In this document: positions 1 through 24,457 of the stretch, piece after piece
How the letters are laid out: each line of letters begins with the position of its first letter
How positions within the stretch are numbered: the stretch's first letter is position 1
Virus record (IMG/VR): IMGVR_UViG_3300033153_007973
Coordinates: 1 to 64,000 of that record
Reading direction: 5' to 3' (one strand)
DNA: 64,000 nucleotides
Notes under the pieces: model-generated
What the model was told of the DNA's origin: nothing
Seen by the model: only the letters and a program-made list of their open reading frames with translations
The model's database searches: none
Program-made: the position numbers and the translations under genes

Positions 1-540
1 TAATTGAGGAATAGCATTGAATGCAAGTAGTCGTGCGAGTCCTTTTACAACAGAGGTCTTACCGACACCAGTTTTACCAATAACAAATGGAACTCTGTTC
101 TTTCTAGCTATGCATGCTGCTAGTTGTGTGATTTCATGTAAGCGACCTACTATTGGTTCTTCTAGGGAGTCCAGGCACATGTTCCCTGGCATTTCTACCT
201 TTGATGCTACCCTTGTTCCACTCTCTGATAGAATGTAGCTGTATAAGTGGTTGCTTGTGTATTTAGCTATCTTAGCAGCAGCACATACGATATCAGTGCT
301 CTCTATTTCATTGGATAATCGGGATCTGGATATCGAACTAGCAACTAAGAGCACCTCATTCATGGTGGTCTTCTTGTTGCCGGCCTTAGTGGCGATTTCT
401 TTAAGCATGACATCATTATCTCCGAGTTGTTCGGTTCTTGTCATAGCATTCGAAATGCATCTTGTTAGTGAGTTAATCGTCTTTGGGGACGAGTCAAACT
501 CTCTTAATATTGCTTTTGCAAGCCTACTTACGCTCTCCAT
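1..540 (-). CDS. ClpA/ClpB/ClpC-family AAA+ ATPase, N-terminal part (runs off window start; not in ORF track)
   Basis: Manual translation from ATG at 540 (AGGAG upstream) gives ...EEPIVGRLHEITQLAACIARKNRVPFVIGKTGVGKTSVVKGLARLL..., matching Clp NBD1 'DPVIGR..EI......RR.[22 protein letters not shown]'. Confidence 0.8.
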   Translation of the reverse strand, partial: MESVSRLAKAILREFDSSPKTINSLTRCISNAMTRTEQLGDNDVMLKEIATKAGNKKTTMNEVLLVASSISRSRLSNEIESTDIVCAAAKIAKYTSNHLYSYILSESGTRVASKVEMPGNMCLDSLEEPIVGRLHEITQLAACIARKNRVPFVIGKTGVGKTSVVKGLARLLAFNAIPQL

Positions 541-554
541 GTTTTCTCCTTTGT

Positions 555-597
555 AAAAAGGGGGACACGAATGATACATTGACCATTCGTGTCCTCC
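555..597 (-). terminator. Rho-independent terminator after the RNAP gene
   Basis: Minus strand GGAGGACACGAATG-loop-CATTCGTGTCCCCC followed by TTTTT. Confidence 0.7.
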
Positions 598-607
598 ACT
601 GTGTCAG

Positions 608-3600
608 TTACTTCGACGTATCCGACATCACCATTGTGTTGCTTCTTGAAGCCATTTGAAGGAAGAGACTTACAATGCTCCCGTCATCACCTTGAGCCGC
701 TGCTCGATGGAGACTTATAACTCCTCCGCTCATTATGGAATGAGCAACTGGTGTTGTCCTTGCGCATATTACGCTGACGCCGGACTGCCACTTACCACCT
801 TTAAACATGCTTTCGACCACCTTCTGCGCGGTCTCTGGCAGGCGCACGAGCTTTGAGAGCTCGTCCTGCAGTTCCTGTCTTGGGACTGCTTCCAGTGACC
901 TTAGCATATTTGTTACTATATCTAGAGTAGCCTTTTGCCCTTCACTATTCTTACTGTTTAGAGCAGGCTGTGCGAGTGAATGGTAGAGATCATTTGCATA
1001 TGTAATCCCTACTCTACCATGATCTTGCACCATGATATTTCGCATGATATTACCAATGTTACCGGCATTTGCAGCACCTTCTTTCATAAATCTGAACTCG
1101 GCTGCTGCAGCTGCCTGACCTTTAACTATGTGCTCAATGCTGACTCTTCCCTTCATATACCTGTTGAAGTCAGCATTTTTCTCTTTGCTATATCTGTCGC
1201 GGATATCTCTCCAGTTTTCGCTGGTACCAGTGGACATTGAAAACCGAAAGTCTACTTTCCGCTTCATGAGATTTTCGCGGGGAGAGATTTTGAGCCCCTT
1301 TAAGGCTTTGGAACAAGAAAGCATGTTGAAATACTTGGCGATCCAGATTTTGCTCAAGTCTGCTTTTGCCTTTGCTCCTAATGGAGCATATGCAATCATT
1401 GTATCGCCATCAAAGTCACCATCGAAAACAGTAACTAATGCTGGATTGAAGCGAATTGTGTTTCCCTTCCATACTAGCATTCTCATGCCTGCTACGTTGT
1501 TTACCTGATGTGCCGGATTTCGGCTGATTAGGCATCTTGCCTTTTGGCGTTTCAGGATAGAATTAATGGATCCTGTTGTTAGGTCCATCCAGTCATCTTC
1601 CGGAATCATATAGGATTTTCGGAAATCGGCAGATGCACACCATTTCTTAAATAGCCGAATTGGAATCTCGCATGTTGTCATGTCTAGTTGTGGATTACCC
1701 GATATTACTGCATGGCAGCTTCTGATAACTCTTGGAAATGCCAGCATTCGGATTATACCTGTCTTCCTGAACAGACGCTTTGCGATACCATTCATTACCA
1801 TGTTGAACATTTGATTTGAGCGAGTTATCATACTTCGCTCTATCCATGGATTGTCATATCCTCCAGCTTTGTGCTTTTCGAAGTTCTGGAAGTATACGAG
1901 CAATGTGTTCAATGCGTTCTGAACATCCGAAACTGTGAAACTTCCATTATTGAGCATATGGGCTTTTAGCGTTTTCGGTACTCTGATGTACATTTCGCCA
2001 TCCGAGCACACATATACATCTTCGGTTTTCACTTTATCTCGGCCCATTCGTGCATTTCGCTCAAATTGGGTTGGGTCATATGATGGTACATTTATCGATC
2101 TTGCGAATGCACCTAAAATTAACTTCATGTCTTTTGGAACTCGAACATAGCCATTTGACTTTAGAAGCCGTGGATCTAGAACTGTTCTCTCACGTAGTTC
2201 TGATTCCACGATATCAGTTTCAGCTGTAAGTGCTGTTCGGTCGATTGCTGTATCGATCACAATCCCATCCATTTGCGATTTCGGCACCAAGAAGCCATTT
2301 CTGGATTTCTTAATAAATCCGCCTTCTAGTGTAAATCCGAAACATTGCATATGATCGATTGTCGCCTCTTCCGCTTGCGTTTTGCGTACTTCGAGGACTA
2401 TCTCTTTTATGAGCTCATCCGCATTAACAGAGTATAAGCTAAACATAACATCAGCAAGAGTATACATACCTTTACCGCGGGGAGCGACTCCTCTATAGTC
2501 CATTAGGACATCCCTGCTGGCCTTAGCCTTTGATTCGGCATGTTGTTCAAGTCGAAAGTATCTAACCCAACCATAGCCCACGTTTTCATACCAGCTACCA
2601 TTTGTCCAGTCTACAACTAGTGCTTCTCGAGGTAGTTTAACTTCTTTGAGTTTCTTCGTAGCATCTTTGAATGAAATGTCATTTGCCAAAAGGGGCATTT
2701 TGCCTTGTGTTGTCTTTCGGGCATATATGCTATACATTTCTTCAAGAATTCGACTCGGACAGCACCTTTTTCCGACATATGGTGGAACGATGATATCTAC
2801 TGGTTGATCATTTATCTTTGGCATATCTTTTCTTGGCAGGATTTTTGCCACAATAACCTTGTTGCCATGATGATCTGCCAGTTTGTCACCGATTGATAAT
2901 CTTAAGGGATAACTCGATTCAACTTGTATATACTTTACGTTTTCATCGGAGTCGTCTCCATTCTCGATTCTTATGTCCGTCACGATAGCTGTTCTCTGTA
3001 GAGATGATCGCATAGGTCCGGCTTTGCATTTCCCGAGGTGTCCTCTGTTTACATATGCATCTAGAGTGTTCACCGCGGAGCGGAACTTCTGGATCATCTC
3101 TGCAGGATTGATTCGCAGAGGTTGTACCGCCAATTCTGCATCTCTGGCTTTGAAGATATCATAGTGTTTGACAATTGTTATGAATTCTTCAGATGCTTCT
3201 TTCGAAATGACACAGCCATCTTCATGAGTATATCCATAATACTCCATTCTTGCTGCCAGAAGATTTCGACCATGGGGTCGGAATTCTGGCTCATCATTCA
3301 TGTCTGCTTCTGGATTTAACATGAGAGGAGGCTCATCGTAGAGTAACTCACATGCTTGTGTTGTATATCTGGCCACGACTTGTCTGTTCGGCGAGATATG
3401 TCGATGAAATGGGTTGTGAGCAAAGATCCAGCTTACTGGGTACTTACCATATGCAATGACATCTCCATCGCTAGTGATTTTGGTTCCCAAACTCAGGTGT
3501 ACTATCTCACCTGCTTTTCCGCTCTGTTGGGTATCACTCATGACAAGATATTCGTTATTGTAAATCTTTTCTGGAGCTCCAAATGGAAGCACAACCTTGC

Positions 3601-4234
3601 CTGCTACATCTCTAGCTTTTAGACGGCTAGGAATATACTCCATTCTGAGCGAGTTTTCGTTGGATACTATTCTTTGAAGCATACCCTGACTGATATTCTC
3701 ACATGCAAACTGATACAGCTTGGAGACTACTTTCTCGTATATCAGGGTATTCTTCCTTACGAGGCGCCATCGGGCAGCATTGTAGCACGATGGTAACGTA
3801 GTTGCGATAACTTTCTTGAATTCACTGAAGTTCAGATACCTGCTCTCTGGTATCCATCCGAAGGTTTGTTTAAACCTGGCTAATTCAGCATCACTGAATA
3901 CCGCACGTTGCAGTATTCTCTCGGTAGCTGTTCCATCGAACGTAGAAGCACGATGATGCTCATGTGGAATATGAAGCATCTTCTTTTCCCAGTTGTACTT
4001 AAGAAATTGTGTAATGGATACTTCTTGGTCATGTGTGATGCATACTGGTGATAACATTACATAATACGGTGGGATCATTCGGTCGTAGTCACGTGCCACG
4101 ACTCTCGCCTTCTTCTCTCCGCGCTTGGTGTTCGCAGTGATGTCGATTTTCATTTCGCCATCTTCGAATAATACACTTAGTTGCGCAGAAGCTCCCGTGG
4201 CGAATTCAACGTGCAGGTCGTTGAAACTCGTCAT
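608..4234 (-). CDS. Single-chain DNA-directed RNA polymerase (fused, minimal beta + beta' like)
   Basis: Beta motifs in order: PFHRH..NRQVVA..TQA, GRNL..YYGYTHEDGCVIS, IGDKLADHHGNKVIVAKILPRKDMP..VDII, YFRLEQHAESK. Then beta' motifs: KTGIIR..PRVIRSCHAVIS, LISRNPAH, catalytic FDGDFDGDTM. Confidence 0.93.
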   Translation of the reverse strand: MTSFNDLHVEFATGASAQLSVLFEDGEMKIDITANTKRGEKKARVVARDYDRMIPPYYVMLSPVCITHDQEVSITQFLKYNWEKKMLHIPHEHHRASTFDGTATERILQRAVFSDAELARFKQTFGWIPESRYLNFSEFKKVIATTLPSCYNAARWRLVRKNTLIYEKVVSKLYQFACENISQGMLQRIVSNENSLRMEYIPSRLKARDVAGKVVLPFGAPEKIYNNEYLVMSDTQQSGKAGEIVHLSLGTKITSDGDVIAYGKYPVSWIFAHNPFHRHISPNRQVVARYTTQACELLYDEPPLMLNPEADMNDEPEFRPHGRNLLAARMEYYGYTHEDGCVISKEASEEFITIVKHYDIFKARDAELAVQPLRINPAEMIQKFRSAVNTLDAYVNRGHLGKCKAGPMRSSLQRTAIVTDIRIENGDDSDENVKYIQVESSYPLRLSIGDKLADHHGNKVIVAKILPRKDMPKINDQPVDIIVPPYVGKRCCPSRILEEMYSIYARKTTQGKMPLLANDISFKDATKKLKEVKLPREALVVDWTNGSWYENVGYGWVRYFRLEQHAESKAKASRDVLMDYRGVAPRGKGMYTLADVMFSLYSVNADELIKEIVLEVRKTQAEEATIDHMQCFGFTLEGGFIKKSRNGFLVPKSQMDGIVIDTAIDRTALTAETDIVESELRERTVLDPRLLKSNGYVRVPKDMKLILGAFARSINVPSYDPTQFERNARMGRDKVKTEDVYVCSDGEMYIRVPKTLKAHMLNNGSFTVSDVQNALNTLLVYFQNFEKHKAGGYDNPWIERSMITRSNQMFNMVMNGIAKRLFRKTGIIRMLAFPRVIRSCHAVISGNPQLDMTTCEIPIRLFKKWCASADFRKSYMIPEDDWMDLTTGSINSILKRQKARCLISRNPAHQVNNVAGMRMLVWKGNTIRFNPALVTVFDGDFDGDTMIAYAPLGAKAKADLSKIWIAKYFNMLSCSKALKGLKISPRENLMKRKVDFRFSMSTGTSENWRDIRDRYSKEKNADFNRYMKGRVSIEHIVKGQAAAAAEFRFMKEGAANAGNIGNIMRNIMVQDHGRVGITYANDLYHSLAQPALNSKNSEGQKATLDIVTNMLRSLEAVPRQELQDELSKLVRLPETAQKVVESMFKGGKWQSGVSVICARTTPVAHSIMSGGVISLHRAAAQGDDGSIVSLFLQMASRSNTMVMSDTSK

Positions 4235-4292
4235 TCGTTTCCTCCCAGAGTTTGGTATATTGGCTACAGATGAGCCATTGCTGATATTGTAA

Positions 4293-4688
4293 TTAATCCT
4301 CCTTTTTGAGCTGATCGATTTGTGTTTTTAGTTCGTTGATAATGTCTTCGTCGCCTAATCCGTAGTTTTGTAGCGTTTTTATAAATGCAGTAGATGCTTC
4401 TCTTAGTTTGCGAAGATCATCGAATATTTTCATTAGTCTTCGTCCTGCTATAAGAATATTTGGCCCAACTACTGATCTTGAGTTAAGACTTATTCTAATT
4501 TTCATACTTTCCATGCTACTAAATGATGTATTAATATGTACTTGCATATTTTCACACCATTTTATAACTGCTGCGAGAGTTGTTTGTTTCTCTCGTTTTC
4601 GGTGGGGATGGTTGATATTCAGTTTCTTGTCACTTGTGGGGTCAAATAATTGGCCATTTGGATCATTTTGTGCATGTTTTATTCTCAT
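4293..4688 (-). CDS. Hypothetical protein with N-terminal QLFDP motif
   Basis: 131-aa ORF in gene orientation. Confidence 0.6.
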   Translation of the reverse strand: MRIKHAQNDPNGQLFDPTSDKKLNINHPHRKREKQTTLAAVIKWCENMQVHINTSFSSMESMKIRISLNSRSVVGPNILIAGRRLMKIFDDLRKLREASTAFIKTLQNYGLGDEDIINELKTQIDQLKKED

Positions 4689-4694
4689 AGTTTG

Positions 4695-5096
4695 TTACGA
4701 ATCTCTTTTTGTCCTTTCCCACTCTAGAATACGTGGCATTACTGCTATCTTAAATGCTGTGAGGAGTTTATCAACTCCTTGTGCTGTTACATCATTAGAA
4801 ATCATAGATCTTTCAAGTGTAGCTATAATCTCACACCAAATTTTATTATATGGATCGATTACTTCTCTGATGTTTGACACAGCAATTTTAAGGTTTAAGC
4901 CACTACTACAGAGTTCCATTCCACAAGTGTTAGTTGTTACTCTCACTCCGTTATCTAGGAACTCAATTCTTGCGCGGTTTTCTTTGCACCATTCTTGTGC
5001 GTCTTCTTCCTCTTTCGTCTCTGTCTTCTTCTCTTCTTTAACTTCTTTGATTGGTTCTCCTGGGATGGGGTCGAAGATGTTGTCAATATCGGGCAT
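4695..5096 (-). CDS. Hypothetical protein with N-terminal DNIFDP motif
   Basis: 133-aa ORF with GAGGTG SD. Confidence 0.65.
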   Translation of the reverse strand: MPDIDNIFDPIPGEPIKEVKEEKKTETKEEEDAQEWCKENRARIEFLDNGVRVTTNTCGMELCSSGLNLKIAVSNIREVIDPYNKIWCEIIATLERSMISNDVTAQGVDKLLTAFKIAVMPRILEWERTKRDS

Positions 5097-5260
5097 ATGT
5101 CACCTCTGTATGGATCAAATAAGTCATCGTTACTTTTCAGGACTTTTGATCTCATTTTATTGCCTTCTTTAGTGCTAAGAATAGACAGAACGGCATGATG
5201 ATTATAACCACTACTGCAATAACTAGTATATTAGCTGATGGTGCTTCGCATTTTTCCATT

Positions 5261-5333
5261 TAGCAGGGACTGGATTCGAACCAGTGACCTAGTGGTTATG
5301 AGCCACTCAAGCTAACCTCTGCTCCACCCTGCT
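5261..5333 (-). tRNA. tRNA-Met(CAT), initiator-like D arm; no encoded CCA
   Basis: AGCAGGG/CCCTGCT acceptor, TGGAGCAG..GGTTAGCT D arm, anticodon loop CTCATAA, T loop TTCGAAT. Confidence 0.9.
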
Positions 5334-5381
5334 GTTGTTTCTGTTTTAACTTGTGATATTCCTTGAAAGCATAAAGAAAAA

Positions 5382-5697
5382 GCATCTTCTAATGACAGCC
5401 AGTTGTGTGTGGATGCCGAGAGTAGCTACACATGATCTGGATTTCTCCAGTGTCGGAATTCACCGAACACCATGTCGTAAGTCTTTTGTCCTGACACATG
5501 ATAACCCGAGTTTAGTCACCTGGGTAGGGTGTGAGTCGTGATGTCGTGAGTCATAAGTCGTTATATTTGAGTCGTGGATCGCTAATGCGATACCAATCTG
5601 AATATAGGTTTCAGGCCTATTCCTCAGTGAGTTTGATCACGATATCGTTCGTGTCAAGGACGCTCTCTATTTCCTCTGTTTACATCACAGAAGATGC
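5382..5697 (-). ncRNA. Candidate ~315-nt structured RNA with short internal repeats, downstream of the coiled-coil gene
   Basis: Ends pair (GCATCTTCT/AGAAGATGC) followed by a T run; internal repeats CACGAC/AACGAC/TATGAC/TACGAC; no credible ORF. Confidence 0.5.
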
Positions 5698-5706
5698 AGT
5701 TTTTGT

Positions 5707-6243
5707 CTAGTCGACCATGTTTGTGGTGGCATTTATCACTTCCAAACGCGATTCAATCTCGTCCAGAAGGTCCTGCCACGCACGCTGTTTCTTGCGCTTG
5801 TCGTCCTCGTTGAACATCGCCATGGCAGTGGGTGTTTTCTCGTTCTCCCGAGCACGCATGCTCAGACGACTCATGCGGCTTTCTGCTTCGTGCAGGTTCA
5901 GGGCGTTGTACGCCAGCGATACAAGGTTCTTGGTCTTCCTGCGGATGTACAGCAGATCAGCCAGAGAGTACTCTTTCCCTTGGATCGTGACTTTGACGGA
6001 CATGTTAGTTCGATCAATCTGGAGCTTCAGTCCGCGCATCTCACGTTCCATGCTTTCGACAGATTGGACAAGGGAAGCGACTTTGGCGGTCTGTTTCTCT
6101 TTTGTCTCGAACCGAGGGATCTCGGTAGAAACCACGGATGCATACTCCTGAATGTCAGTAGCTGTATCGTGACAGCGCTTCTCCAGGACCCGGAGTCTTT
6201 TCAGCCCCTCGATGATCTTTTCTGGTTTCTTCTCTTCTGGCAT
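5707..6243 (-). CDS. Coiled-coil protein resembling the DIP1984/DUF6847-like family
   Basis: IIEGLKRLRVLEKR at the N-terminus and DEIESRLEVINATT at the C-terminus; strong AAGGAG SD. Confidence 0.6.
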   Translation of the reverse strand: MPEEKKPEKIIEGLKRLRVLEKRCHDTATDIQEYASVVSTEIPRFETKEKQTAKVASLVQSVESMEREMRGLKLQIDRTNMSVKVTIQGKEYSLADLLYIRRKTKNLVSLAYNALNLHEAESRMSRLSMRARENEKTPTAMAMFNEDDKRKKQRAWQDLLDEIESRLEVINATTNMVD

Positions 6244-6291
6244 TGTGTTCTCCTTTTAATCGTGATGTAATATAGCTGATACTTGACCATG

Positions 6292-10493: not shown

Positions 10494-10896
10494 AGTAATT
10501 ATCCTCTTCTTTTGTGGTCTCTTCCACGATAGTTTTCTGTCCTTTTCTTTCGTGAGATCTTAGCGTATTCGTAATATGTGCACCGAGAGTTGCATATCGT
10601 TCATTGGTTGAGCATGCGAGAATCCAGCCATCATCCATGGAGAAGATCTTGCTTTCGATCTCCATTGACTCCTTGTTTACGTAGGAAATCTTGTAAGATA
10701 CCTGATCATCTTCTGTATGGTAGAATCGCTTCTCTTCACCAGGTGATCTTGCTGCGTTGGTAAAGCACCAGTTGGCTTTTCCGACTGGTCCTTTTCCATA
10801 TTCTATCTTGTGGTTATCTCCGCACGTGAGACAGCCAATGAGAAAGATTCCGCATAGGAAACCGATGAGTCCGCCAGCCCAGAATTCTCCGTCCAT
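10486..10896 (-). CDS. Hypothetical membrane-anchored protein
   Basis: N-terminal hydrophobic helix. Confidence 0.55.
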   Translation of the reverse strand: MDGEFWAGGLIGFLCGIFLIGCLTCGDNHKIEYGKGPVGKANWCFTNAARSPGEEKRFYHTEDDQVSYKISYVNKESMEIESKIFSMDDGWILACSTNERYATLGAHITNTLRSHERKGQKTIVEETTKEEDNYYD

Positions 10897-11486
10897 TATT
10901 TCTTCTCCTTCTTTGTTATAACCTCATCGACGAGGCCATACTTGACTGCTTCCTCGGCAGTCATGTAATTATTTCTCTCAGTATCGATGGTGATCTTCTC
11001 GATTTTATGACCTGTATGATATGCCAGAATTTCGTCGAGCTTTCTCCTGGTCTTTTTCATCTCCTCGGCTTCGATCATGACATCTGTTTCCTGTCCGGAT
11101 GCGCCGCCAGCCACCTGGTGAATCATTACTTTTGCATTGGGTAGGATCTTACGTTTACCCTTAGCGCCCGCGGTCAGGAGAAGTGACCCCATAGAAGCAG
11201 CCATACCGATGCAGAGAGTACATACATCTGCCTCGATATATTGCATAGTATCATAAATGGCTAATCCCTCGGAGACAATACCACCCGGTGAATTGATATA
11301 GAAGAAGATATCTTTCTTGGGATCCTCAGCTTCAAGGAACAGAAGCTGCGCTGTGATCAATGCAGAGGAAACAGATTCAACTGCCCCATGAAGCATGACT
11401 ACTCGTTCTTTAAGCAGTCTGGAGAAGATATCATAGGATCGTTCACCTCTGCTGGTCTGTTCGATTACGACTGGTACGAGGTTCAT
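10896..11486 (-). CDS. clpP: ATP-dependent Clp protease proteolytic subunit
   Basis: [54 protein letters not shown]. Confidence 0.97.
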
Positions 11487-12039: not shown

Positions 12040-12774
12040 TTAGTTATAAGGATGGAATGGCAGCTGTTCTTTAAAGTCATTGTATCTAACTCTGCTGACA
12101 ATCGTTCCTATTTGTTCTTCTGTTACTCGAGTATTACGAGATAATGGTTGACTATCGTATACATATTTGAGAATGGCATCCATCTCAGCATAAGTCATTC
12201 CGATGTCACCTTCATCTGTCTGATCCTTCCATAGTTCAGCAGTTGCTGGTCTATCGATAATCTCTTCAGGTACTTTGAGAATTTTCGCCATCTCATATAC
12301 GTCTGTTTTGTAGACATTCCAGAGAGGAGCAATATCTTCTGCACCATCACCATGAAGAGTATAGTATCCTAGCATTCTCTCGGTCTTATTGCTTGTACCG
12401 AGTACGATTGATTGATGGGCTTTAGCCTGATCATATAGACAAATCATGCGCACTCTGGCCATGATGTTGCCTTTACGTATTAAACTGAGATCTGTATTAA
12501 GGTCTGCACATGCATTTACTGCATGTGAGATAGGTATGGTCATGTGATTTACATGCATCTGTTCTGCGAGGCGACCTGCAATAGTGGTTGATGATGTACG
12601 AGTATACGGTAAGCTGTATGTTCGTACACAGTCATATCCTATGGCCTTCACTGCCAACATAAGACAGACCGCTGAGTCCAAGCCTCCGGAGAGACCCAGA
12701 ACCACTCCTTGCATGTCTCCTACTTTTTCTACGATAAACTTTGTGAGTTCATCTATCTTATATTCTATATTCAT
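12040..12774 (-). CDS. nadE: NH3-dependent NAD+ synthetase
   Basis: VVLGLSGGLDSA, GNIMARVRM, VLGTSNKTE..LGYYTLHGDG, PATAELW..QTDE. The ORF-track start overlaps a tRNA; true start likely 12774. Confidence 0.93.
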   Translation of the reverse strand: MNIEYKIDELTKFIVEKVGDMQGVVLGLSGGLDSAVCLMLAVKAIGYDCVRTYSLPYTRTSSTTIAGRLAEQMHVNHMTIPISHAVNACADLNTDLSLIRKGNIMARVRMICLYDQAKAHQSIVLGTSNKTERMLGYYTLHGDGAEDIAPLWNVYKTDVYEMAKILKVPEEIIDRPATAELWKDQTDEGDIGMTYAEMDAILKYVYDSQPLSRNTRVTEEQIGTIVSRVRYNDFKEQLPFHPYN

Positions 12775-12794
12775 CTCATATCCTCCCAGATATG

Positions 12795-12866
12795 CAGCCG
12801 GTGTTGGAATCGAACCAAACGTTCTCAGGATCAAAACCTGATGTCCTACCATTGAACGAACCGGCT
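12795..12866 (-). tRNA. tRNA-Gln(TTG)
   Basis: AGCCGGT/ACCGGCT acceptor, TCAGG-TTTTGAT-CCTGA anticodon arm, TTCGATT T loop. Confidence 0.9.
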
Positions 12867-12868
12867 AT

Positions 12869-14023
12869 TTATGCTCCTGCCTTGAAATTATAGATAGGCT
12901 TAACAAACTTCTTGACCTCGACGGTGTCCTCCATTGCCTTGATAATCATATCTTTATCTTTGTATGCGCCTGGAGCTTCATCGAGAGTGTTCTTTGTTGC
13001 TGATGTTGTAAATACGCCGGCATCCTTCATGCCTGCCTGCATGTCTTCTAGGGAGAGCTGTTCCTTAGCTCTCTTCCTGGAGAGGACTCGGCCGGCACCA
13101 TGTGGTGCTGAGAAGTTCCAGTCCTTATTACCTTTGCCCTTACCAAGAATTAAGCCATCCTTCATATTAAATGGAATGACTACTTCTAGATCCTTAGATG
13201 CATTAATAGCACCCTTGCGGATGATACCAGCATGTGTATCTATATAGTTATGTACTGAATGAATCTGATGTCGTGGTTCGAGACTACACCCCTTTTGCAG
13301 ATGTTCCAGAATCTTCTTAGTTAGTAGTTCTCGATTGATTTGTGCGAAGGTTGTAGCAACTCGCATGTCTTCTAGATACTCTTTAGATCCAAATTCCTCT
13401 GTGAGGAACTCGAGACGGTGATATGCAGCACCAATGAACATCTTCTTCATTGCTTCTTTGGCTTTGTTCTGGTGGTGCATGCAGATATCATTACCAAACT
13501 TTCTGGATCCTGAGTGTATCGTGAGCCATTTCTGATCTTCCTCATCGATGCCTATCTCAATGAAGTGGTTCCCACCACCTAGGCTACCCATTGCATGGAG
13601 GTTTCTGTTAGTGTCTGTCTTCATGCGAGTACCAACTTCTGTGATTCTCTCCATGAGAGGGCCTAAGATGCCTCTGGGATTTGGTGTCTTAGCGTTTACA
13701 CTGAAACCGCTTGCGATGCTATTATGAATAAAGTTGTCAAGCTTCTCGAGGTTGATATCGTCATCATTTAGTTTCGTGGAGAGCACGCCACATCCGATAT
13801 CTACACCCACAATGCAAGGAATGACATATTCATTCGTGGTCATAGTGAATCCAATACAGCTACCCATACCAGCATGACAATCAGGCATAATTACGATATT
13901 GGACTTTGCAAATGCAGGATGGTTAAGGAAGCCATAAATCTGAGTAGTGACAGATTCTTCCAGATGAGATTCATCTGGAAGCATGATCTTAGCTACGTTG
14001 TGCTTTGCTTTGATTACGAACAT
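12869..14023 (-). CDS. rtcB: RtcB RNA ligase (3'-phosphate/5'-OH)
   Basis: IMPDCHAG, VGVDIGCG, GSLGGGNHFIE, IHSGSR, HNY, RKGA, SAPHGAGR, DEAPGAYK. Confidence 0.96.
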   Translation of the reverse strand: MFVIKAKHNVAKIMLPDESHLEESVTTQIYGFLNHPAFAKSNIVIMPDCHAGMGSCIGFTMTTNEYVIPCIVGVDIGCGVLSTKLNDDDINLEKLDNFIHNSIASGFSVNAKTPNPRGILGPLMERITEVGTRMKTDTNRNLHAMGSLGGGNHFIEIGIDEEDQKWLTIHSGSRKFGNDICMHHQNKAKEAMKKMFIGAAYHRLEFLTEEFGSKEYLEDMRVATTFAQINRELLTKKILEHLQKGCSLEPRHQIHSVHNYIDTHAGIIRKGAINASKDLEVVIPFNMKDGLILGKGKGNKDWNFSAPHGAGRVLSRKRAKEQLSLEDMQAGMKDAGVFTTSATKNTLDEAPGAYKDKDMIIKAMEDTVEVKKFVKPIYNFKAGA

Positions 14024-14895: not shown

Positions 14896-15435
14896 TCATT
14901 GCTGGCCATCCCTTCTTCCGTGAATAATATGGCTGATATATGATGTTGTGCATTTGTATTTGCGTGCAATTTCTTGTCCTTCAATGCCTGCTCTCCAGAG
15001 ACGTTTTACTTCTCGTCTCATTTTCTTGCGAGACTTTCTTCTGGCAGCATTGATTTTACGTACACGGGTTTTCTTATCGACAGCTGTCTTGATTCGATCA
15101 GCTACATCATTACTATGATTTCTAGATGCATCAATTACTGCAAGCATTTGTTTAATGTCTCTTTGTCTGTGTATTCCCATATAAGGGTATAGCTTAGCTA
15201 AGAGATTCTCAATTTCGTATCGCTTATGAAGACCCCACATATATGCTGTACCATGTACGCGAGGGCGGTTCTTAATTGGATGTACTGTACCGCCGGCGAT
15301 TCCCTTTATCTTGTACATGATATCTCGTTTGTATGATGTGGTGCGGAGTTGAGTAATATTACTATATTTCTGTATGATAAAGGATCCTCGACTCTCAAAG
15401 AACCCAGCTAACCATTTTAAATCACCTATCTTCAT
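14896..15435 (-). CDS. LAGLIDADG-like homing endonuclease with C-terminal HTH
   Basis: LKWLAGFFESRGSF (degenerate LAGLIDADG), LYPYM, EIARKYKCTTSYISHI. Confidence 0.65.
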   Translation of the reverse strand: MKIGDLKWLAGFFESRGSFIIQKYSNITQLRTTSYKRDIMYKIKGIAGGTVHPIKNRPRVHGTAYMWGLHKRYEIENLLAKLYPYMGIHRQRDIKQMLAVIDASRNHSNDVADRIKTAVDKKTRVRKINAARRKSRKKMRREVKRLWRAGIEGQEIARKYKCTTSYISHIIHGRRDGQQ

Positions 15436-16968: not shown

Positions 16969-17451
16969 CTACATGATATTATATCTTTTGGCCCATTTTC
17001 GTACTGCATTATCGGTTACTCCGAATTCTCTTCCGATAGTGCACCATGATTTGGTCTGTATTGCTATCTTTAGTTCTTCTCTGGAAGGTCTTTCCACCTT
17101 TCTGGATCCTACTGCGGAACATCTATATGAGCAATACTTCTTGTTCTCTGTGAGTTTTCCGCATTGCTTACATACTTGAGTTGGTACAGATTTTTCGCAG
17201 GAATATGTTCCATCATTTTCTAGCTTTGCGATTCCACCCATGTGGAATCTTGCATGTTCTCCTAGACTCCTGAATAACATGAGATTATCAATTTTGTTGT
17301 TAGTGCGATCGTTATCTCTATGATGAACAGTTTCTGATGACGTTAATGGTCGTCCAAACTTTTGTGAGATAACGTATCTATGCTCTAACATCATTCCGTT
17401 TTTACGCGTACTATTGCCTTTTGATGTTTCTTTATATTGCCATTTGCTCAT
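16969..17451 (-). CDS. HNH homing endonuclease with Zn ribbon and C-terminal HTH
   Basis: EHRYV..GRPL...ETVHHRDNDRTNNKIDNL; CKQC..YCSYRC; IGREFGVTDNAVRKW. Confidence 0.88.
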   Translation of the reverse strand: MSKWQYKETSKGNSTRKNGMMLEHRYVISQKFGRPLTSSETVHHRDNDRTNNKIDNLMLFRSLGEHARFHMGGIAKLENDGTYSCEKSVPTQVCKQCGKLTENKKYCSYRCSAVGSRKVERPSREELKIAIQTKSWCTIGREFGVTDNAVRKWAKRYNIM

Positions 17452-17469
17452 ATTCGAACCTCCATACCT

Positions 17470-17498: not shown

Positions 17499-17500
17499 CT

Positions 17501-17571: not shown

Positions 17572-17577
17572 ATTACA

Positions 17578-18300: not shown

Positions 18301-18831
18301 CTATATGATTTTCTTGTTGAAGAACTTGTATGCTTCTTGGTGTCGCCATTTGCTGATGGCCTTATAATACTCTTGTCGTCCTTTATGAGTGATAATTGTT
18401 ACCGGATACTTCTTGATCTTGTTCTCGCACCACAGTAAGAGCAAGCGACCGGTTCGGCCATTTCCATCCACAAATGGATGTGTTACTTCGAATGCATAGT
18501 GTACATTCATGCAGTCAATTGGCTTCTTTACTTCGTTGGCTGCCTTCACTACTCTCTCCAGCATACCAAGAATCTTGGTAGGAGGCGGACAGCTAAAGCC
18601 TCCTACTCTAACAGCAACAGGTCTGATAAGTCCTGTATAATGAGGAGGTAAGATCCCTTTCATCATGGTCTTATGCCAGTTAAGGATGTCCTGAATTATC
18701 AGGTTTTTCTTGGTTGTCAATGCTTTTGCTGCAGCTTTTAAGTGTTGGTCGAACTCCGGTGTTCCTGGATCCTCAAAGATGTCCTCGATAGCATTTGACT
18801 CACTAACTAGTTCTTCTATTCTGTTTTCCAC
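18301..18831 (-). CDS. Fic-domain protein
   Basis: HPFVDGNGRTGR canonical motif; ESNAIE. Confidence 0.93.
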   Translation of the reverse strand: MENRIEELVSESNAIEDIFEDPGTPEFDQHLKAAAKALTTKKNLIIQDILNWHKTMMKGILPPHYTGLIRPVAVRVGGFSCPPPTKILGMLERVVKAANEVKKPIDCMNVHYAFEVTHPFVDGNGRTGRLLLLWCENKIKKYPVTIITHKGRQEYYKAISKWRHQEAYKFFNKKII

Positions 18832-19196
18832 TTGTTACTCCTTAGTCTTTTTATATGGGTCAAATAGTTCATCTATACTGAATTTTCTCGACTTATGCTG
18901 CTTTCGTTTTGGCCGCTATTCTTGATATATGCTTTCTTCATCTTCTTTGTTATCTTATCTGACATATGCTACTCCTTCTTGATTATGAAACTAGTTCCTA
19001 CCATTACACTTTGCTCAATTTCTCTTCTTAGCCTTCTCAGCTTTAGGAAACTGAACATATATCGGAATTTAGGTATCTTGATGACGATAGTGTTATTTTC
19101 TCCTGGTTCTATTTTATACCAGTTGAAACCAAGGAATAACATGATTTGTTCATAATCATATATACTAACTAATGTTCTTAACATCTGTTACTCCTT

Positions 19197-19268
19197 TCGG
19201 GGTGAGAGGGATCGAACCTCCGATCTCTGCGTCCCAAACGCAGCGCCCTACCGCTAGGCTACACCCCG
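19197..19268 (-). tRNA. tRNA-Pro(TGG); its 5' end contains the HNH stop codon
   Basis: CGGGGTG/CACCCCG; CTGCG-TTTGGGA-CGCAG; TTCGATC. Confidence 0.92.
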
Positions 19269-19753
19269 TTTTTCATGTAGTGCTCTTCTGCATGACAGTT
19301 TCTGCAGAGCACTTCTAAATTTCTCAATCTGTTATCCTTTCTGTTTCTGTTCTTATGATGTACTTCTAATGCTGATACACACTTCTTATATGAGCATTTG
19401 CTGCATTCCTTCCCATAGTGGTCGAATGCTTTCTGTCGATAACCCCCACTATCTTCACGGTAGTTTGGGTGTTTCTTTCCAAAGTACAATGTATTTCTAT
19501 GAGCATTCGAACAAGATCTACCGCAGAAGCTCTTGCCGCTTTTAGATCTCTTCAGTTGACTTGGTTTGGCATAGAATTCTTTGCTGCACCAAGCACACTT
19601 AACTTCTTTTCCTTTCAGCCTGGATGCTTTAATACATTCTTTGGAGCAATAGTTCTTGTGTCCAAGCCATTGATTTTGTTGATGATACTTAATGTATTTC
19701 TCATAGGTCTTGCCACATTGTGCACATTTGACGGTTACATTTTTATGTCTCAT
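19259..19753 (-). CDS. HNH homing endonuclease with Zn-finger repeats
   Basis: CAQC..YCSKEC, CAWC..FCGRSC, LEVHHKNRNRKDNRLRNLEVLCRNCHAEEH. Confidence 0.9.
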   Translation of the reverse strand: MRHKNVTVKCAQCGKTYEKYIKYHQQNQWLGHKNYCSKECIKASRLKGKEVKCAWCSKEFYAKPSQLKRSKSGKSFCGRSCSNAHRNTLYFGKKHPNYREDSGGYRQKAFDHYGKECSKCSYKKCVSALEVHHKNRNRKDNRLRNLEVLCRNCHAEEHYMKNGV

Positions 19754-19759
19754 GTACCT

Positions 19760-19788
19760 ATTGTATCATGATATCTGCTTTCCGTCAA
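19760..19788 (-). promoter_or_regulatory. sigma70-type promoter giving a probably leaderless HNH mRNA
   Basis: TTGACG-17-TACAAT with TG extension; ATG follows 6 nt after the -10 box and has no SD. Confidence 0.75.
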
Positions 19789-19791
19789 CCA

Positions 19792-19832
19792 TCCCAAAGC
19801 AGGCGTCCTAGACCAGGCTAGACCATCTCCCG
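19792..19832 (-). pseudogene. 5' half of tRNA-Pro(TGG), truncated at the anticodon loop
   Basis: CGGGAGA-TG-GTCTAGCCTGGTCTAGGAC-G-CCTGC-TTTGGGA, then the HNH promoter. Confidence 0.8.
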
Positions 19833-20473
19833 TTGTATTATTTATCCCATACTATGTTCTTGATCCGCTTACATTCCCCTACTTTTAGTTTAGGTCCGAA
19901 CGATTTCGGCCATCCATAAAAGCTTGTTTCCCATTCTGATTTTAGGAACATGAAATGTGGATCATATTCATCATAATAGATATTGCGCCAGCCTTTTGGG
20001 TTCATTGCGATAGTAGTATATGGTAACGGATTATTATCGTCGCCGTTTCTGCCTACCCATAAACCTGCTTTCATTTTTGACAATATGATCTCCTTTTTGT
20101 CTATGGCAAATCCCGTTTTCTGCCACACCACGTACATCTTGTTCTTACCCCTTTTCGGTATCCCAAGAGGAATACAATTATACTATATGTTGATAGTCCA
20201 ATTGCTATCAACATAATGCTCATGTATTCCTCCTGGTGTTCAGTTGTTTTATCGTAACTGGTTTATTATCCTTTTCTAAGAATGCTTTCATGCATTCTGG
20301 GCATAGAGACATGGATCCTTTCTTTTTGTATCCTTCGCTTGCCTTCTTCTCTGTAATGATAACCGATGGTTTATTCTTGCATCTCTTCATAGAAGGAATA
20401 CCTAAAGTTATAAATGAATACTTTCTTGACTCGGCCTGACATCGTGTTTTATCCGGTGGTATAAGTTTCTCCG

Positions 20474-20686
20474 TCATGGTGCAATTCCTTCATCCCACAT
20501 ATATGTATCTGGTCCATCTTCACCATCACTATATTCTTTTACCCATTTCTTATATGCTTCATTACTTCTCATTAAAGCTCTGACAACCTGATCGATGACC
20601 CACATCTTATGGTGTCCTCCATCAAAGCCTCCATTATCATATATCATATCCATAGCTTCCTTAATTCTTTCTTCTGGTGTTTTCAT
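20474..20686 (-). CDS. Conserved small phage protein
   Basis: GGFDGGHHKMWVIDQVVRAL...WDEGIAP pattern. Confidence 0.65.
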   Translation of the reverse strand: MKTPEERIKEAMDMIYDNGGFDGGHHKMWVIDQVVRALMRSNEAYKKWVKEYSDGEDGPDTYMWDEGIAP

Positions 20687-20956
20687 CTTATTCTTCCTTG
20701 ATGGCTTTGATGAGAGCTTTTTCTATTGCTATCTCATCATCACCAAATGGGCATCCGAACTCAATATTTCTTAATGCTATATCCATGAGTTTCAGTATTC
20801 GGTCTTGTTCTTCATTCTTTCCATCCTTCTTTCCATATCTGTATCCGTATGCCTCGTTGAGTTTTCTATCCTTCTTTAGATCACCGAGTGTCATATCCGT
20901 GACCTGAAGATTGTTTAACTCTGCTTCTTTGGGACTATCCATCTTATTCTCCTTTG

Positions 20957-21028
20957 AGCCGGGAACTGGACACGATCCAGCAACCTACTGCTTACAGGGC
21001 AGTCGCTCTACCATTGAGCTATCCCGGC
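20957..21028 (-). tRNA. tRNA-Thr(TGT), atypical T loop
   Basis: GCCGGGA/TCCCGGC; ACTGC-CCTGTAA-GCAGT; T loop ATCGTGT. Confidence 0.85.
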
Positions 21029-21226
21029 GAAATTGTTACTTCTTCGGCTTTACATCTACCCATTCGTTACCATGTTTAATACGGATAGTGGTATTGAGTT
21101 TGTTTGCGCTCCTCTGGGCACGTGCTAACTTGTTCTTGTATGTTCTTTCTCTCTTTTCTTCTTCTGTGTATGTATTGCTTCTGGTCTTTTCGCCTGACAT
21201 TTTATTACTCCTTATTCTTTTGTTTA

Positions 21227-21299
21227 AGCCAACGGCAGGGATCGAACCTGCGTACTCCTCTTTACGGGAGAGGCGCTATTCCATCTTAGCTACGCTGGC
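21227..21299 (-). tRNA. tRNA-Thr(CGT)
   Basis: GCCAGCG/CGTTGGC; CCTCT-CCCGTAA-AGAGG; TTCGATC. Confidence 0.9.
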
Positions 21300-21749
21300 G
21301 AATTGCACTACCTTGTAGTGGGGCTACAGGTAGTGCGTCGCCAGCTCGGTTGTGGTGTGCGGAACTGAGTTGGGGAGGTATTGCAGCTGTTCGTGGATTC
21401 GAACATCTGACCATAGTATAGCATCCCCTCCCAGAATGTCAACTATTTCTTCCTAAATATTTTATGCCGTATTCTGTACTATGTTTTCGGTATCCCCATA
21501 GACCAGAAATGATACCATGATCGATAATTGAGTTTCTGAGTAGATGCGAGAAATCAGATGGTAACATATAATATTCTGTTTCTGTAGCTACATCTTTGAG
21601 GAAGCGACCGCGTGGTCTGGCGAATCGCATCGTTGCTTCAAATGTTCCTGAGCGCCACTCAATATCTGGACTATGTAGATTACTGTGGTACTCGCTCATA
21701 ATCATTCTGTTCTCGTTTGTATTAAATGGAACTCTCTTGTCCCAGGCCA

Positions 21750-22130
21750 TTACTTCTCTCCTTCTGTACCACAGTAGCTGCACTTTCCTCCGTCGGCAGC
21801 ACCTCTACCATTACACATGACACAGTCACCATCTACTGTATTATGTTGTCTTCGGGCAACCCTCATCAGGATAAGATACCCGATGAGATCTTGCTCAGTG
21901 TCTTCATGAATAGCCACTTCTGGCATATTCTTGATGTTCTGGATGCGCTTAAGCTTATCGTCAATCCTTACATCTATCTGCTCTTCAGCGCTAAGGGATG
22001 AGAAGACATTTATGGGCTCCAGCGCACTGTTGCCATATTCTTTGTTCTTCGCGAGTAGGAGGTTCTTCACCATGTCGCATTCCTCGACAATCATCTTTTG
22101 TACTCTTGTCAGTTCTTCTTCTTCTGGCAT
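21750..22130 (-). CDS. DUF1599 / nucleotide-modification-associated helical domain protein
   Basis: LLLAKNKEYGNS, VRIDDKLKRI, EDTEQDLIGYLIL. Confidence 0.7.
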   Translation of the reverse strand: MPEEEELTRVQKMIVEECDMVKNLLLAKNKEYGNSALEPINVFSSLSAEEQIDVRIDDKLKRIQNIKNMPEVAIHEDTEQDLIGYLILMRVARRQHNTVDGDCVMCNGRGAADGGKCSYCGTEGEK

Positions 22131-22997
22131 ATGATATATCTCCTATTAGTTTTGATCCCTCGAGCTTGTATATTTCACCTTTCTCTATCCTGAGGTGACC
22201 ATACTTATACTTGTCATACCTGACCAGGAATTCTGGATGTCTACTGTGATATGTATTCTTCTCCTTCTTGCATGGAATATGTTCTTCGAATCCATATGAT
22301 TTAGACCAGTGTATCCATTTGCCTGTTGTTACGAATGTAGCTTCGATGCCGCGGAGACGTGCACGTCCGATATATACTCCTGGATCTAGATAATCGTATC
22401 TATGGTGCCATAATCCGGGCCAGGGTGGTCTTACCATATCTTCCTCAGCATTTTGTTTACCTTCCTTAGGATTGGATCTACCCACTTACCTTCTACTGCA
22501 AAGCTGATCCATCCCCGGGTAGCTATAATGATTAGGAATAGTAATGTTGTATCTCCTACTCCGATAGCCCATGAGGTAAACATGAATATCATGTATATAA
22601 GTAATATCTTAAGCATCATATTAAGGATCATATTACCCCCTTGGTCTGACGCAGGATCGTTCACAGTTGGGACATTGTATTAGGTGTCCGATATATCGAT
22701 TCTTTCTATCGAGTTTGACCCAGTCGTTACAGTCGGCATGTTTGATCTTGCCAAAGACATTCCATTCCCATTTGCAGGAGTTGCATGTGAAAAGAGTTCC
22801 GCGGCCGAAGAATCGTGCAGTATCTCTAAGGAATTTGTTGATATCTACTTTGTCCCAGGTTCGATTAAATGAGAATCCTTCATTAAGTTTCTTCTTGATG
22901 TATTTGCTTAGCCAGCTCATATTTTCCTCTTTTCTTCTTGACATTCTGAGGATATATCATACATCTATGGTATCTTGTTCTTAAGGGGGTCTTTATC

Positions 22998-23450
22998 ATG
23001 ACTATTAACAACGTAAGTCTTGAGTATGCCGCCGGTTTTTTCGATGCAGATGGTGTAGTAGCTCTTCACCGTTGGAGAGAGGGTTGCTGGCGAGCGCCCG
23101 TGATCCGGTTCTCGAATATCTGTAAAGCTACTCTGCAAAAGATCCAGGCGGCTGCAGGGGAGAAGAGCTATTTGTCTGTCCAATCTGGATGCGATAAGAA
23201 ACGGCATCATAGCAAGCGTTATTACCTGGAGTTTTCGTATCATTCGGCTATTCGCTTTGCTGTTAAGCTTCTGAAGTATTCACATCATCCTCAAAAGCGT
23301 AAGCAACTTGACCTCGTAGCTAATAAGTATCTCGAGGTGACTTCTAGGGGTGGAAGCTATACACCCTCTATGCGCAAGGCCAAAGAACGATTTGAATCAA
23401 AGTTCCAAGCTATCCGCGTCTCTGCCAGCACTAAGCGTTGGTCATCCTGA
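22998..23450 (+). CDS. LAGLIDADG homing endonuclease, inserted antisense to the surrounding genes
   Basis: YAAGFFDADG motif; KRKQL; GGGGG SD. Confidence 0.8.
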   Translation: MTINNVSLEYAAGFFDADGVVALHRWREGCWRAPVIRFSNICKATLQKIQAAAGEKSYLSVQSGCDKKRHHSKRYYLEFSYHSAIRFAVKLLKYSHHPQKRKQLDLVANKYLEVTSRGGSYTPSMRKAKERFESKFQAIRVSASTKRWSS

Positions 23451-23881
23451 CCAGTAACTCCAATAGAGGCGAAGCGCTGGGCTTCTTAGTCGTAATAGTC
23501 TTCTTCTACTGCGTAGTAGTCTTTGTCTGATGCTTCTGTATTAGTAGAAGCTACGACTTCTACTCTGGCAAGAGCTCGTTTATTCTTGTAGTATCTCATA
23601 AGATTATTCTTTATGAGGAGATCTTCTTGAGACAGCTCTTGCTTAGCAATAGGTTTGATCTGACCTAAACTGCGTTCGTTAGCGAGAGGAGTGCTTGTTT
23701 GAGTGGAGTCAATGACTTCAGATACAGCTTTGGTCTTGCGATGATCTTCGATTGTTTTGTTCTTGTCTTTCTTATCGTCATCATTATTAAGAAGGAAGAA
23801 GAACACACCTGGGAGGATTAACAACCATGGGATTCCTGAGCTATCATCGGACATCTTAATCTCCTTATCTTATATGATATG

Positions 23882-23954
23882 CTCCCCAGGAGAGACTCGA
23901 ACTCTCAACCTACTGGTTAACAGCCAGTTGCTCTACCAATTGAGCTACCGGGGA
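23882..23954 (-). tRNA. tRNA-Asn(GTT)
   Basis: TCCCCGG/CTGGGGA, G73; ACTGG-CTGTTAA-CCAGT; TTCGAGT. Confidence 0.93.
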
Positions 23955-23959
23955 ATAAG

Positions 23960-24079
23960 ATGATTAACTGTGCCGAGTGTCGTTGGCAGACAACGCTCAT
24001 CAGGGTTTGTTCGCTGCCGCGACCCTGACCATCATAATACAACCAATCTGTCGTATATACGAGAGACACAGTTAATCAT
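23960..24079 (-). ncRNA. Candidate structured RNA between tmRNA and tRNA-Asn
   Basis: 13-bp terminal stem ATGATTAACTGTG/CACAGTTAATCAT enclosing three hairpins. Confidence 0.5.
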
Positions 24080-24081
24080 TT

Positions 24082-24457
24082 TGGACCCGGCGGCATCGAA
24101 GCCGCGTCCGCGATCTTTTCCCCTCAGAAAGTTTACTACCATTGGGAGCGAGCAAGCTCGCACGTTCCACCATCCCTTATTTAGCGACTAGGGAAGTCGT
24201 AACGAGTCCCTTTCGGGAGTAACTCCCTTCAGTGCGTGCCTCCCCGGGTACAGAAGGGTACTCTTGCCGGTTCAGCCCTGCACTCTTAAGCGCAGGCAAC
24301 GTTCTGGTTCATGGAACCGAAGTTCCCGACCAGAATCGTGTCGTTGGCGTTAGTTTCGTCAACTTTGGTTTGAATCCTCAGTTTTATGACTTAAGCATTC
24401 TTAGGTCAGGTAGCTTTCTTTGTTTACTAGAACCGCGTCGAAACCAATTTCGGGCCC
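24082..24457 (-). ncRNA. ssrA: tmRNA
   Basis: 5' GGGCCCGAAATTGGTTTCGAC and 3' GACGCGGCTTCGATGCCGCCGGGTCCA; G3-U acceptor wobble; tag ORF 24348-24286 reads ANDTILVGNFGSMNQNVACA*. Confidence 0.92.

Follow-up and report, generated by a model that had tools for sequence, protein, structure and literature searches.

Does a phage that carries a transfer-messenger RNA (tmRNA), a ClpP peptidase and a Clp-type ATPase possess a tag-and-destroy system of its own? This question is raised by the IMG/VR virus record IMGVR_UViG_3300033153_007973, whose first 64,000 nucleotides, here called the window, contain the three components. A sequence-only reading of the window had listed them and proposed that the unusual peptide encoded by the tmRNA may be tuned to the phage's own unfoldase. 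The contig is one piece of 234,008 bp, of which the window is the first 64 kb. Its bases 1-114 are repeated at positions 233895-234008 (114-bp terminal overlap), and the record is classified as a virus with direct terminal repeats and 100% completeness; it represents a complete, circularly assembled 234-kb phage genome. We consider it somewhat better than an even bet that this phage encodes a ClpCP-type protease together with a working, host-dependent tmRNA, a coupling between the two being possible.

The case is compact: one ClpP, one unfoldase, and one tmRNA whose tag lacks the AA end critical for ClpX. To our knowledge, phage-borne tmRNAs and Clp proteases have been catalogued, and none has been functionally tested. 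New in this genome are a ClpC-like unfoldase with a dead D1 module and a private N-domain, a tag that ends in -VACA and contains an in-frame hairpin, and a network of short peptide motifs ending in FDP. Comparable gene sets are on record for Bacillus phage G and for the Sinorhizobium phage AP-J-162 (PMC12484599, PMC11242549), and tmRNAs are known in huge phages generally (PMC7162821).

The Clp ATPase and ClpP

The window opens inside the ATPase gene. Positions 1-540 (minus strand) hold the first 180 codons of a Clp/Hsp100 protein of 730 residues, which likely starts at the ATG at 540, with the Shine-Dalgarno sequence AAAGGAG 6 nt upstream. The open reading frame (ORF) opens 29-68 nt past the stop codon of an RNA polymerase (RNAP)-like gene (608-4234, minus strand); the earlier placement of a Clp ATPase at 1-540, directly after the RNAP gene, is borne out by the ORF, its start codon and its Shine-Dalgarno sequence. 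The remainder of the gene lies across the circular junction on the same strand (genome C1:232242-233894 = L001:8234-10000) and is joined through the overlap of the contig ends. The full length of the protein (P0003) is given by the public gene call on a 120-kb fragment of the same phage. The gene straddles the artificial break at the contig ends and is therefore cut short or counted twice when the linear record is annotated.

At the level of domain architecture, the protein shows the two AAA+ modules of the class-I Clp/Hsp100 ATPases, i.e. a D1 with AAA_lid_9 (Pfam, E-value 1e-7) and an AAA_2-type D2 (6e-64) followed by the D2-small domain (ClpB_D2-small, 1.5e-8). It matches the ClpA, ClpB and ClpC models with E-values from 1e-112 to 1e-89. 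NCBIfam aligns it to ClpA, ClpB, ClpV, ClpG and ClpK, all equivalog cut-offs being far from reached; the 588-residue C-terminal part (P0001) scores 377 for ClpA (cut-off 993) and 364 for ClpB (cut-off 1232). The best relative of solved structure is ClpC of Bacillus subtilis (PDB: 3j3t; 8e-89 over D1, linker and D2), and the D2 core is 55-60% identical to Bacillota ClpC. No other Clp-type AAA_2 protein occurs in the genome; a second, weak AAA_2 match is a clamp-loader subunit.

The motifs of the ATPase were read from an alignment with ClpC and ClpB proteins and with the closest relative (P0004). The sequence-only reading had pointed to the rest of the ATPase as the place to look for a ClpP-docking loop, and the recovered part contains one: KYGMGF aligns exactly at the VGF/IGF/MGF docking loop of ClpC and is kept in the 71%-identical relative, whereas the aligned ClpB sequences are gapped here or lack the GF. 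The protein thus displays the [LIVM]-G-[FL] loop that separates the unfoldases partnering with ClpP (ClpA, ClpC, ClpE, ClpX) from ClpB. The loop is disordered in the predicted structure, as expected, and we know of no role for a conserved MGF loop besides ClpP docking. B. subtilis ClpC (PDB: 3j3t, 3pxi) has VGF at the same position and shares with the phage protein a short middle region; the long M-domain of the ClpB type is missing here. A MecA or McsB adaptor gene was not seen, no search having been aimed at one. By architecture and docking loop, the ATPase is best described as a ClpC-like partner of ClpP, not as ClpC, ClpA or ClpE proper.

Where the phage protein departs from Bacillota ClpC is in D1 and in the N-domain. 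D2 is canonical throughout, with Walker A, Walker B, the GYIG pore loop, the sensor and the arginine finger all kept. D1 retains its Walker A, but the Walker B DE, sensor-1 and two arginine fingers are lost in both P0003 and P0004; the hhhhDE is replaced, and ALERRF has become ELKKSA, in the ATPase and its relative alike. Judged by these residues, D1 does not look catalytically competent. Because Walker A is kept, D1 probably still binds ATP, and it may aid the assembly of the hexamer; the loss of Walker B, sensor-1 and the arginine fingers would leave it unable to hydrolyze the nucleotide. With this ATPase, nature would provide an experiment on the part that a D1 ring incapable of hydrolysis plays in a machine of the ClpC type. 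The Clp ATPases of other large IMG/VR records are at most 35% identical to it, and the degenerate D1 sets it apart from them. In the first ~135 residues, Pfam finds no Clp_N domain (PF02861), and Hhalign against 12 Clp_N domains yields a probability of 0.2%. Language-model features place the N-domain near Clp_N clusters at 0.89, which is below the trust level of the tool and serves as a lead only.

The second component, clpP (10896-11486, minus strand), encodes 196 residues without a propeptide. Its Ser (AASMG), His (MIHQ) and Asp (DTERN) are in place, and alignment to 6mx2 and to E. coli-type ClpP shows the intact triad as well as the N-terminal loop VPxVxE..RGERxYD. The protein scores 256.8 bits for PF00574 (MEROPS S14; cut-off 20.2; E-value 1.4e-76) and 309 bits for PRK00277 (cut-off 249), and its score for the equivalog TIGR00493 (289.8) is slightly below the cut-off of 308.6. 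With a bacterial ClpP of solved structure it shares 66% identity; the nearest ClpPs, from Spirochaetota and Clostridia, share 64-69% identity, and none is closer. There is a single CLP_protease match in the genome. By its scores and residues, the product is a canonical bacterial-type ClpP, which bears out the earlier assignment of clpP to this position.

Do the two proteins pair? A complex was predicted from two copies of ClpP and residues 415-730 (D2) of the ATPase, along with three controls. The ipSAE is 0.34, compared with 0.00 for the best control, and the verdict of the tool is 'weak support'; the runs share at least 84% of their contacts, and the partner pLDDT is at least 73. Taken together with the conserved docking loop, this prediction makes an association of the ATPase with ClpP likely. 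Moreover, ClpP is present in 10 of the 19 other large IMG/VR records bearing a class-I Clp ATPase, and the pair therefore recurs in big phages, in agreement with reviews (PMC7824862).

An ATPase that acts without ClpP, as a disaggregase or as a translocase in virion assembly, while the phage ClpP teams up with ClpX, ClpC or ClpA of the host, appears very improbable to us. This division of labor would suit the degenerate D1, the unusual N-domain and the modest verdict on the complex, and also the position of the ATPase gene, which lies away from clpP in an operon-like run with the RNAP-like gene and a protein with FDP motifs; in addition, a ClpP with this degree of identity to bacterial ClpPs looks fully host-compatible. 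It is difficult to reconcile, however, with a conserved MGF loop, which ClpB-type disaggregases lack, and with a short M-region of the ClpC kind.

The tmRNA and its tag

A one-piece tmRNA of 375 nt is encoded at 24083-24457 (minus strand), with the discriminator A at 24082; the CCA end is not encoded. The Rfam model RF00023 matches positions 24079-24457 of this strand with 49.4 bits (gathering score 47; E-value 1.7e-16), full-length over model positions 1-374. This match and the architecture of the RNA confirm the tmRNA previously noted at 24082-24457. Its tRNA-Ala-like domain possesses a T arm and an acceptor stem of 7 bp, in which the 5' strand (24451-24457) pairs with 24083-24089 and forms a G3:U70 wobble. 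G3:U70 is an alanine identity element. According to the Rfam alignment, the 3' strand of pseudoknot 1 (PK1) lies at 24372-24378; it is followed after 11 nt, the usual spacing, by the resume codon and by an open frame whose stop codon is in the loop of helix 5 (24275-24297). The minimum-energy fold (z -2.7) gives the acceptor stem, a long P2 helix, the T arm and helix 5. A mere attP site or 3' fragment of ssrA was considered as well and is ruled out by the full length of the gene with its 5' tRNA-like domain (TLD), PK1 and tag frame.

The T arm (24090-24105, minus strand) consists of a 5-bp stem and a 6-nt loop, GCGGC-UUCGAU-GCCGC, and the 6-nt loop had been noted before. Its existence is read directly from the sequence; it is no peculiarity of this gene. 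ARAGORN makes no call for this tmRNA, and when one base is added to the T loop, a tmRNA of 377 nt is called. In a scan of metagenome contigs, the exact 21-nt T arm was found in 117 stretches that are otherwise unrelated to the phage tmRNA. ARAGORN calls a tmRNA, without any alteration, in 16 of the 80 stretches that were fetched, with ordinary tags such as ADHEFALAA, and Rfam recognizes a one-piece or permuted tmRNA in 17 of 20 stretches tested, with up to 162 bits. A T loop of 6 nt is thus a variant that is common in nature and does not set this tmRNA apart. An assembly error in the T loop is ruled out by the same 117 stretches and the 17 Rfam tmRNAs.

For its activity, the tmRNA would depend on the host. 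The complete phage genome contains no match to SmpB (PF01668), and host SmpB is therefore required; rescue factors with an RF-1/ArfB domain were not found in the genome either. We infer a working trans-translation RNA that would borrow SmpB, AlaRS, EF-Tu and the CCA-adding enzyme from the host. A 289-residue ORF 3 kb from the tmRNA (27094-27963, minus strand) has a very weak match of the PolyA_pol/CCA-adding type (11.7 bits), which is not confirmed by Pfam; such a gene would matter because neither the tmRNA nor the tRNAs of the window (CCA encoded in 0 of 11) carry the CCA end. A tRNA-Asn gene (23881-23954, minus strand) lies directly downstream of the tmRNA. The 11 tRNAs of the window are located between 5261 and 33341, further ones at genome positions 65314-70657, and the 31 tRNAs of the genome cover nearly all amino acids. 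Interspersed with the tRNA genes are an RtcB RNA ligase (12869-14023), two HNH endonucleases (16969-17451, 18301-18831) and a Fic/DOC-family protein (19259-19753), all on the minus strand.

One could also regard the tmRNA as a decaying copy, or as a decoy that titrates host SmpB and does no tagging. The marginal Rfam score, the poorly aligned PK2-PK4, the missing ARAGORN call and the lack of an SmpB gene would be in line with this idea, and a phage tmRNA reduced to the TLD (DS6A) has been proposed to inhibit tmRNA by SmpB titration (PMC4131195). Yet the 7-bp acceptor stem with G3:U70, P2, PK1, the frame of 24 codons and the helix-5 stop are all intact, many bacterial tmRNAs that look functional have exactly this T arm, and a long frame that stays open through a structured insert argues for selection on translation. 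We find decay or decoy hardly credible.

The tag frame, including the TAA stop codon, extends over 24286-24360 (minus strand). Both the Rfam alignment and ARAGORN set the resume codon at GAC (24360), while the sequence-only reading had started at GCC (24348), in the same frame and four codons downstream. Hence, the frame and the -NQNVACA-stop end stand as described, and the start is to be corrected: the tag probably begins four codons upstream of GCC and comprises 24 residues, i.e. DETN plus the 20 residues given before, with an unchanged C-terminus. Most of the extra length is supplied by an irregular hairpin with a UUCG tetraloop (24300-24338, minus strand), which lies in frame and contains no stop codon. 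The hairpin resembles an insertion into an ancestrally shorter tag.

How unusual is this tag? Among the ~1,270 tags of the library embedded in ARAGORN, 1190 end in AA, none ends in CA, and none has a Cys in the last four residues; ~5% reach at least 20 residues. The residues NQNVA are common to the phage tag and to that of B. subtilis. When 185,579 species genomes were searched for DNA that codes for NQNVACA followed by a stop, a single match emerged (Leeia oryzae), which is no tmRNA. The ending is therefore rare and was not copied from a known host. Both phage tags in the ARAGORN library are atypical, too: the tag of phage G ends in QVA, and that of the mycobacteriophages Bxz1/Catera has 25 residues and ends in ALV. 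Bxz1 (cluster C) resembles the present phage in its one-piece tmRNA, its long non-AA tag and in that no phage SmpB has been reported (PMC4131195), but its genome contains neither an AAA_2 ATPase nor ClpP. Thus, an atypical tag need not mean that the phage has an unfoldase of its own; endings other than -LAA seem to be characteristic of phage tmRNAs as a whole and would not require a phage unfoldase.

Coupling of tag and protease

In the reading we favor, ClpP and the ClpC-like ATPase would assemble into a phage-encoded protease of the ClpCP type: the MGF loop would dock into ClpP, the canonical D2 ring would unfold and thread the substrates, and the divergent N-domain would set the machine's own specificity for clients or adaptors. 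During infection, the tmRNA, acting separately from this protease, would free ribosomes stalled on broken messages and add Ala and the 24 residues to the nascent chains. The last three residues, LAA, are the critical determinant for ClpX (PMC9382460), and the non-AA end of the phage tag probably weakens recognition by the host ClpX. Tagged chains would then persist or go to another unfoldase, for which the phage ATPase is the obvious candidate.

Several observations weigh against this reading. The ATPase, clpP and the tmRNA share a strand and the same non-structural arm of the genome, but not an operon; gaps of 10 and 13 kb with dozens of genes part them, among which are DNA ligase, NAD synthase, RtcB, tRNAs, HNH endonucleases and the Fic/DOC protein, and there is no co-localized module. 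The ipSAE of the predicted complex only just passes, and it may stem from solved Clp complexes already known to the predictor. The AlphaFold (AF2) model of the full-length ATPase is mediocre, with a pLDDT of 64 and values below 50 in the N-domain, and the word search found a single relative of the ATPase, the 71%-identical P0004 on a 3-kb JGI contig. Finally, the tmRNA exceeds the Rfam gathering score by just 2.4 bits, and PK2-PK4 align poorly.

A stronger version of the coupling would be a dedicated orthogonal circuit, in which -VACA is a private degron, poorly read by the host ClpX and specifically read by the phage unfoldase, which hands it to the phage ClpP. We consider this unlikely. The three genes occur in one genome, the docking loop is present, the divergent N-domain could give private specificity, and the tag ending is without precedent in the ARAGORN library and absent from the tmRNAs of the species genomes searched. 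There is also a precedent for the co-evolution of tag and protease: in Mollicutes, the tag has switched its protease and is read by Lon (PMC9382460). The tag of Mesoplasma/Mycoplasma is long (~27 residues) with a non-LAA end, as is the phage tag (PMC9382460); there, however, the switch to Lon was shown experimentally in a cell without ClpXP, while here the host presumably keeps ClpXP.

Phage G is the closest parallel for the combination of genes. Besides a tmRNA with a non-AA tag (AKLNITNNELQVA, ending in QVA), this giant phage (499 kb) likewise encodes a ClpP and a Clp unfoldase of its own (PMC12484599; PMC4131195). Its unfoldase is a single-ring ClpX encoded next to clpP, whereas the present one resembles ClpC, has two rings of which D1 is dead, and is encoded 10 kb from clpP, and the tag is about twice the length of that of phage G. 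The two phages show no sequence relatedness, a search of the phage collection being without a match.

What speaks against a dedicated circuit is, apart from the unlinked genes, Bxz1 with its 25-residue tag ending in ALV and neither of the two Clp proteins. Furthermore, unfoldases of the ClpA/ClpC type usually read C-terminal tags loosely or via adaptors. None of the 19 further large phage records that have Clp ATPases yielded a tmRNA above the cut-off, the sensitivity of this search being too limited for a true negative. A coupling through the tag is plausible; its tuning to the phage unfoldase, as originally suggested, is a conjecture, weakened by the comparison with Bxz1.

Conversely, the modules may be uncoupled. 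The tmRNA would then serve only to recycle ribosomes, and its non-AA end would spare the tagged proteins, mostly those of the phage, from the host ClpXP, i.e. rescue without destruction; the Clp pair would serve for the degradation of host proteins or defense factors, for amino-acid recycling, or for the timed removal of early phage proteins. The dispersed genes favor such an arrangement, as does the location of the tmRNA within an island of tRNA and RNA-repair genes (RtcB, 31 tRNAs, HNH endonucleases), and atypical tags exist in phages without Clp genes. In jumbo phages, ClpP, ClpS, ClpA and ClpX have a patchy distribution and were predicted to target host proteins or to take part in assembly (Iyer et al. 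2021; PMC7824862); phage ClpP, ClpA and ClpX are accordingly read in reviews as anti-host or assembly factors (PMC7824862), and the tmRNAs of huge phages have been interpreted as ribosome rescue (PMC7162821). On the other hand, a tag of this length, with a C-terminal Ala retained and small hydrophobic residues at its end, resembles a degron rather than an inert peptide. Uncoupling strikes us as unlikely; if true, the genes would be an ordinary addition to the host-like genes known in jumbo phages.

Short peptide motifs and neighboring genes

The sequence-only reading had also described two families of short peptide tags as possible adaptors or substrates of the Clp machine. The first one is real. 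A consensus P-[TS]-M-x-[DE]-[LI]-F-D-P is common to a dozen otherwise unrelated small proteins, where it is mostly located no more than 8 residues from the C-terminus. Its core, [DENS][LIM]FDP, occurs 16 times in the six-frame translation, always on the minus strand, and 11 times in called ORFs, compared to 0.33 expected from shuffles. In the window, the sites belong to 30517-30768, 30777-30983, 41109-41519, 42893-43300, 43300-43821, 43811-44257, 49442-49912, about 49950-50300 and 51880-52149, and to positions 5081 and 5125 (minus strand); in the rest of the genome they are found at 206249, 213035 and 222041-222334 and in the protein P0244 (L001:7463-8233, minus strand). The residues past the motif are dictated by the Shine-Dalgarno sequence and ATG of the next gene. 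Synonymous sites inside the motif vary, and N-termini, position 5081 and a VWA protein have the motif as well; selection therefore acts on the peptide and not on a DNA signal.

A loose tie to the ATPase is provided by P0244. The start of its gene overlaps the stop codon of the ATPase (translational coupling), and its tail contains two copies of the motif. The homolog in the 71% relative is 37% identical overall, with both copies kept and the linker between them diverged; as the two copies are conserved in a protein coupled to the ATPase, the motif is loosely connected to the latter. P0244 obtained no function from Pfam or PHROG and no lead from the language-model atlas, and the word search found no more homologs.

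What the motif is recognized by can be viewed in different ways; a degron, a docking site for an adaptor and a motif for clamp binding are all conceivable. The family-B DNA polymerase of the phage (genome 213059-215620) carries a comparable sequence in its tail, VDIFDV, nine residues before the C-terminus, and a clamp-loader subunit (DNA_pol3_delta2, 2e-30) is encoded at genome 204284-205282 (L083:925-1923, minus strand). The VDIFDV tail recalls the clamp-binding tails of the T4 and RB69 polymerases, which we take as a lead only. Given the similar polymerase tail and the phage clamp loader, a clamp-binding function appears at least as good a reading as that of an adaptor, substrate or degron. 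The genome yielded no match to a sliding clamp of the DnaN or gp45 type.

A more far-reaching proposal would be a private degradation code, in which the ClpC-like unfoldase reads both the -VACA tag and the terminal [DE][LI]FDP of a dozen small early proteins and, in two copies, of P0244, and thereby times the removal of early proteins and stalled products. It would amount to an orthogonal set of tag, adaptor and protease, driven by a D2 that is the only motor; D1 would be structural, and the N-domain would be unique to this protein. We regard this proposal, including its view of the machine, as quite doubtful. If the tag or the FDP motif were indeed read specifically by the phage unfoldase, the system would be a natural orthogonal pair of degron and protease; it would illustrate how protein quality control comes under viral command and could become a tool of synthetic biology, as mf-Lon did.

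The second motif family, [VI]-R-[SD]-G-[LI]-I-P plus two to five residues, is small and lies outside the range of the original observation (1-24457); it ends four adjacent ORFs on the plus strand (61633-61977, 61967-62278, about 62700-63010, 63397-63684), at the start of a plus-strand block. The minus strand holds nearly all genes of the first 60 kb, and the standard genetic code suffices throughout, with no need for an alternative code. Relatives of the phage are scarce: the phage collection gave no match with the tmRNA, and for the RNAP only cellular matches at the level of rpoB. In IMG/VR, the only relative is the 120-kb fragment of the same phage, which does not include the clpP-tmRNA region, and the 5' tmRNA pattern had no match in this database.

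Other genes of the window suggest further functions. NAD synthase, a phosphoribosyltransferase-like protein (weak QRPTase_N match) and an isochorismatase/nicotinamidase-like protein are encoded on the minus strand (12040-12852, 33356-34408, 34405-34962); this set may serve NAD+ salvage or reconstitution, possibly as a counter to NAD-depleting defense. A protein of 402 residues (31038-32246, minus strand) combines an N-terminal membrane segment with an SPFH/Band 7 domain. N-termini that by eye resemble LAGLIDADG homing endonucleases are seen at 22998-23450 (plus strand) and 14896-15435 (minus strand; no Pfam match), with the sequences ..AAGFFDADG.. and ..LAGFFESRGSF...

The RNAP-like protein encoded upstream of the ATPase has 1208 residues and unites double-psi barrels of the beta type and the beta-prime type in one chain (Rpb2_6, 1.6e-19; Rpb1_2, 8e-11). 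GDFDGD, the active-site motif of the RNA polymerase beta-prime subunit, is present in three large proteins, namely in this one (608-4234, minus strand), in one of 912 residues (56921-59659, minus strand), and in one of 2274 residues (genome 113448-120272, plus strand). The distribution of the motif suggests several single-chain RNA polymerases with two barrels, one of which is possibly packaged in the virion.

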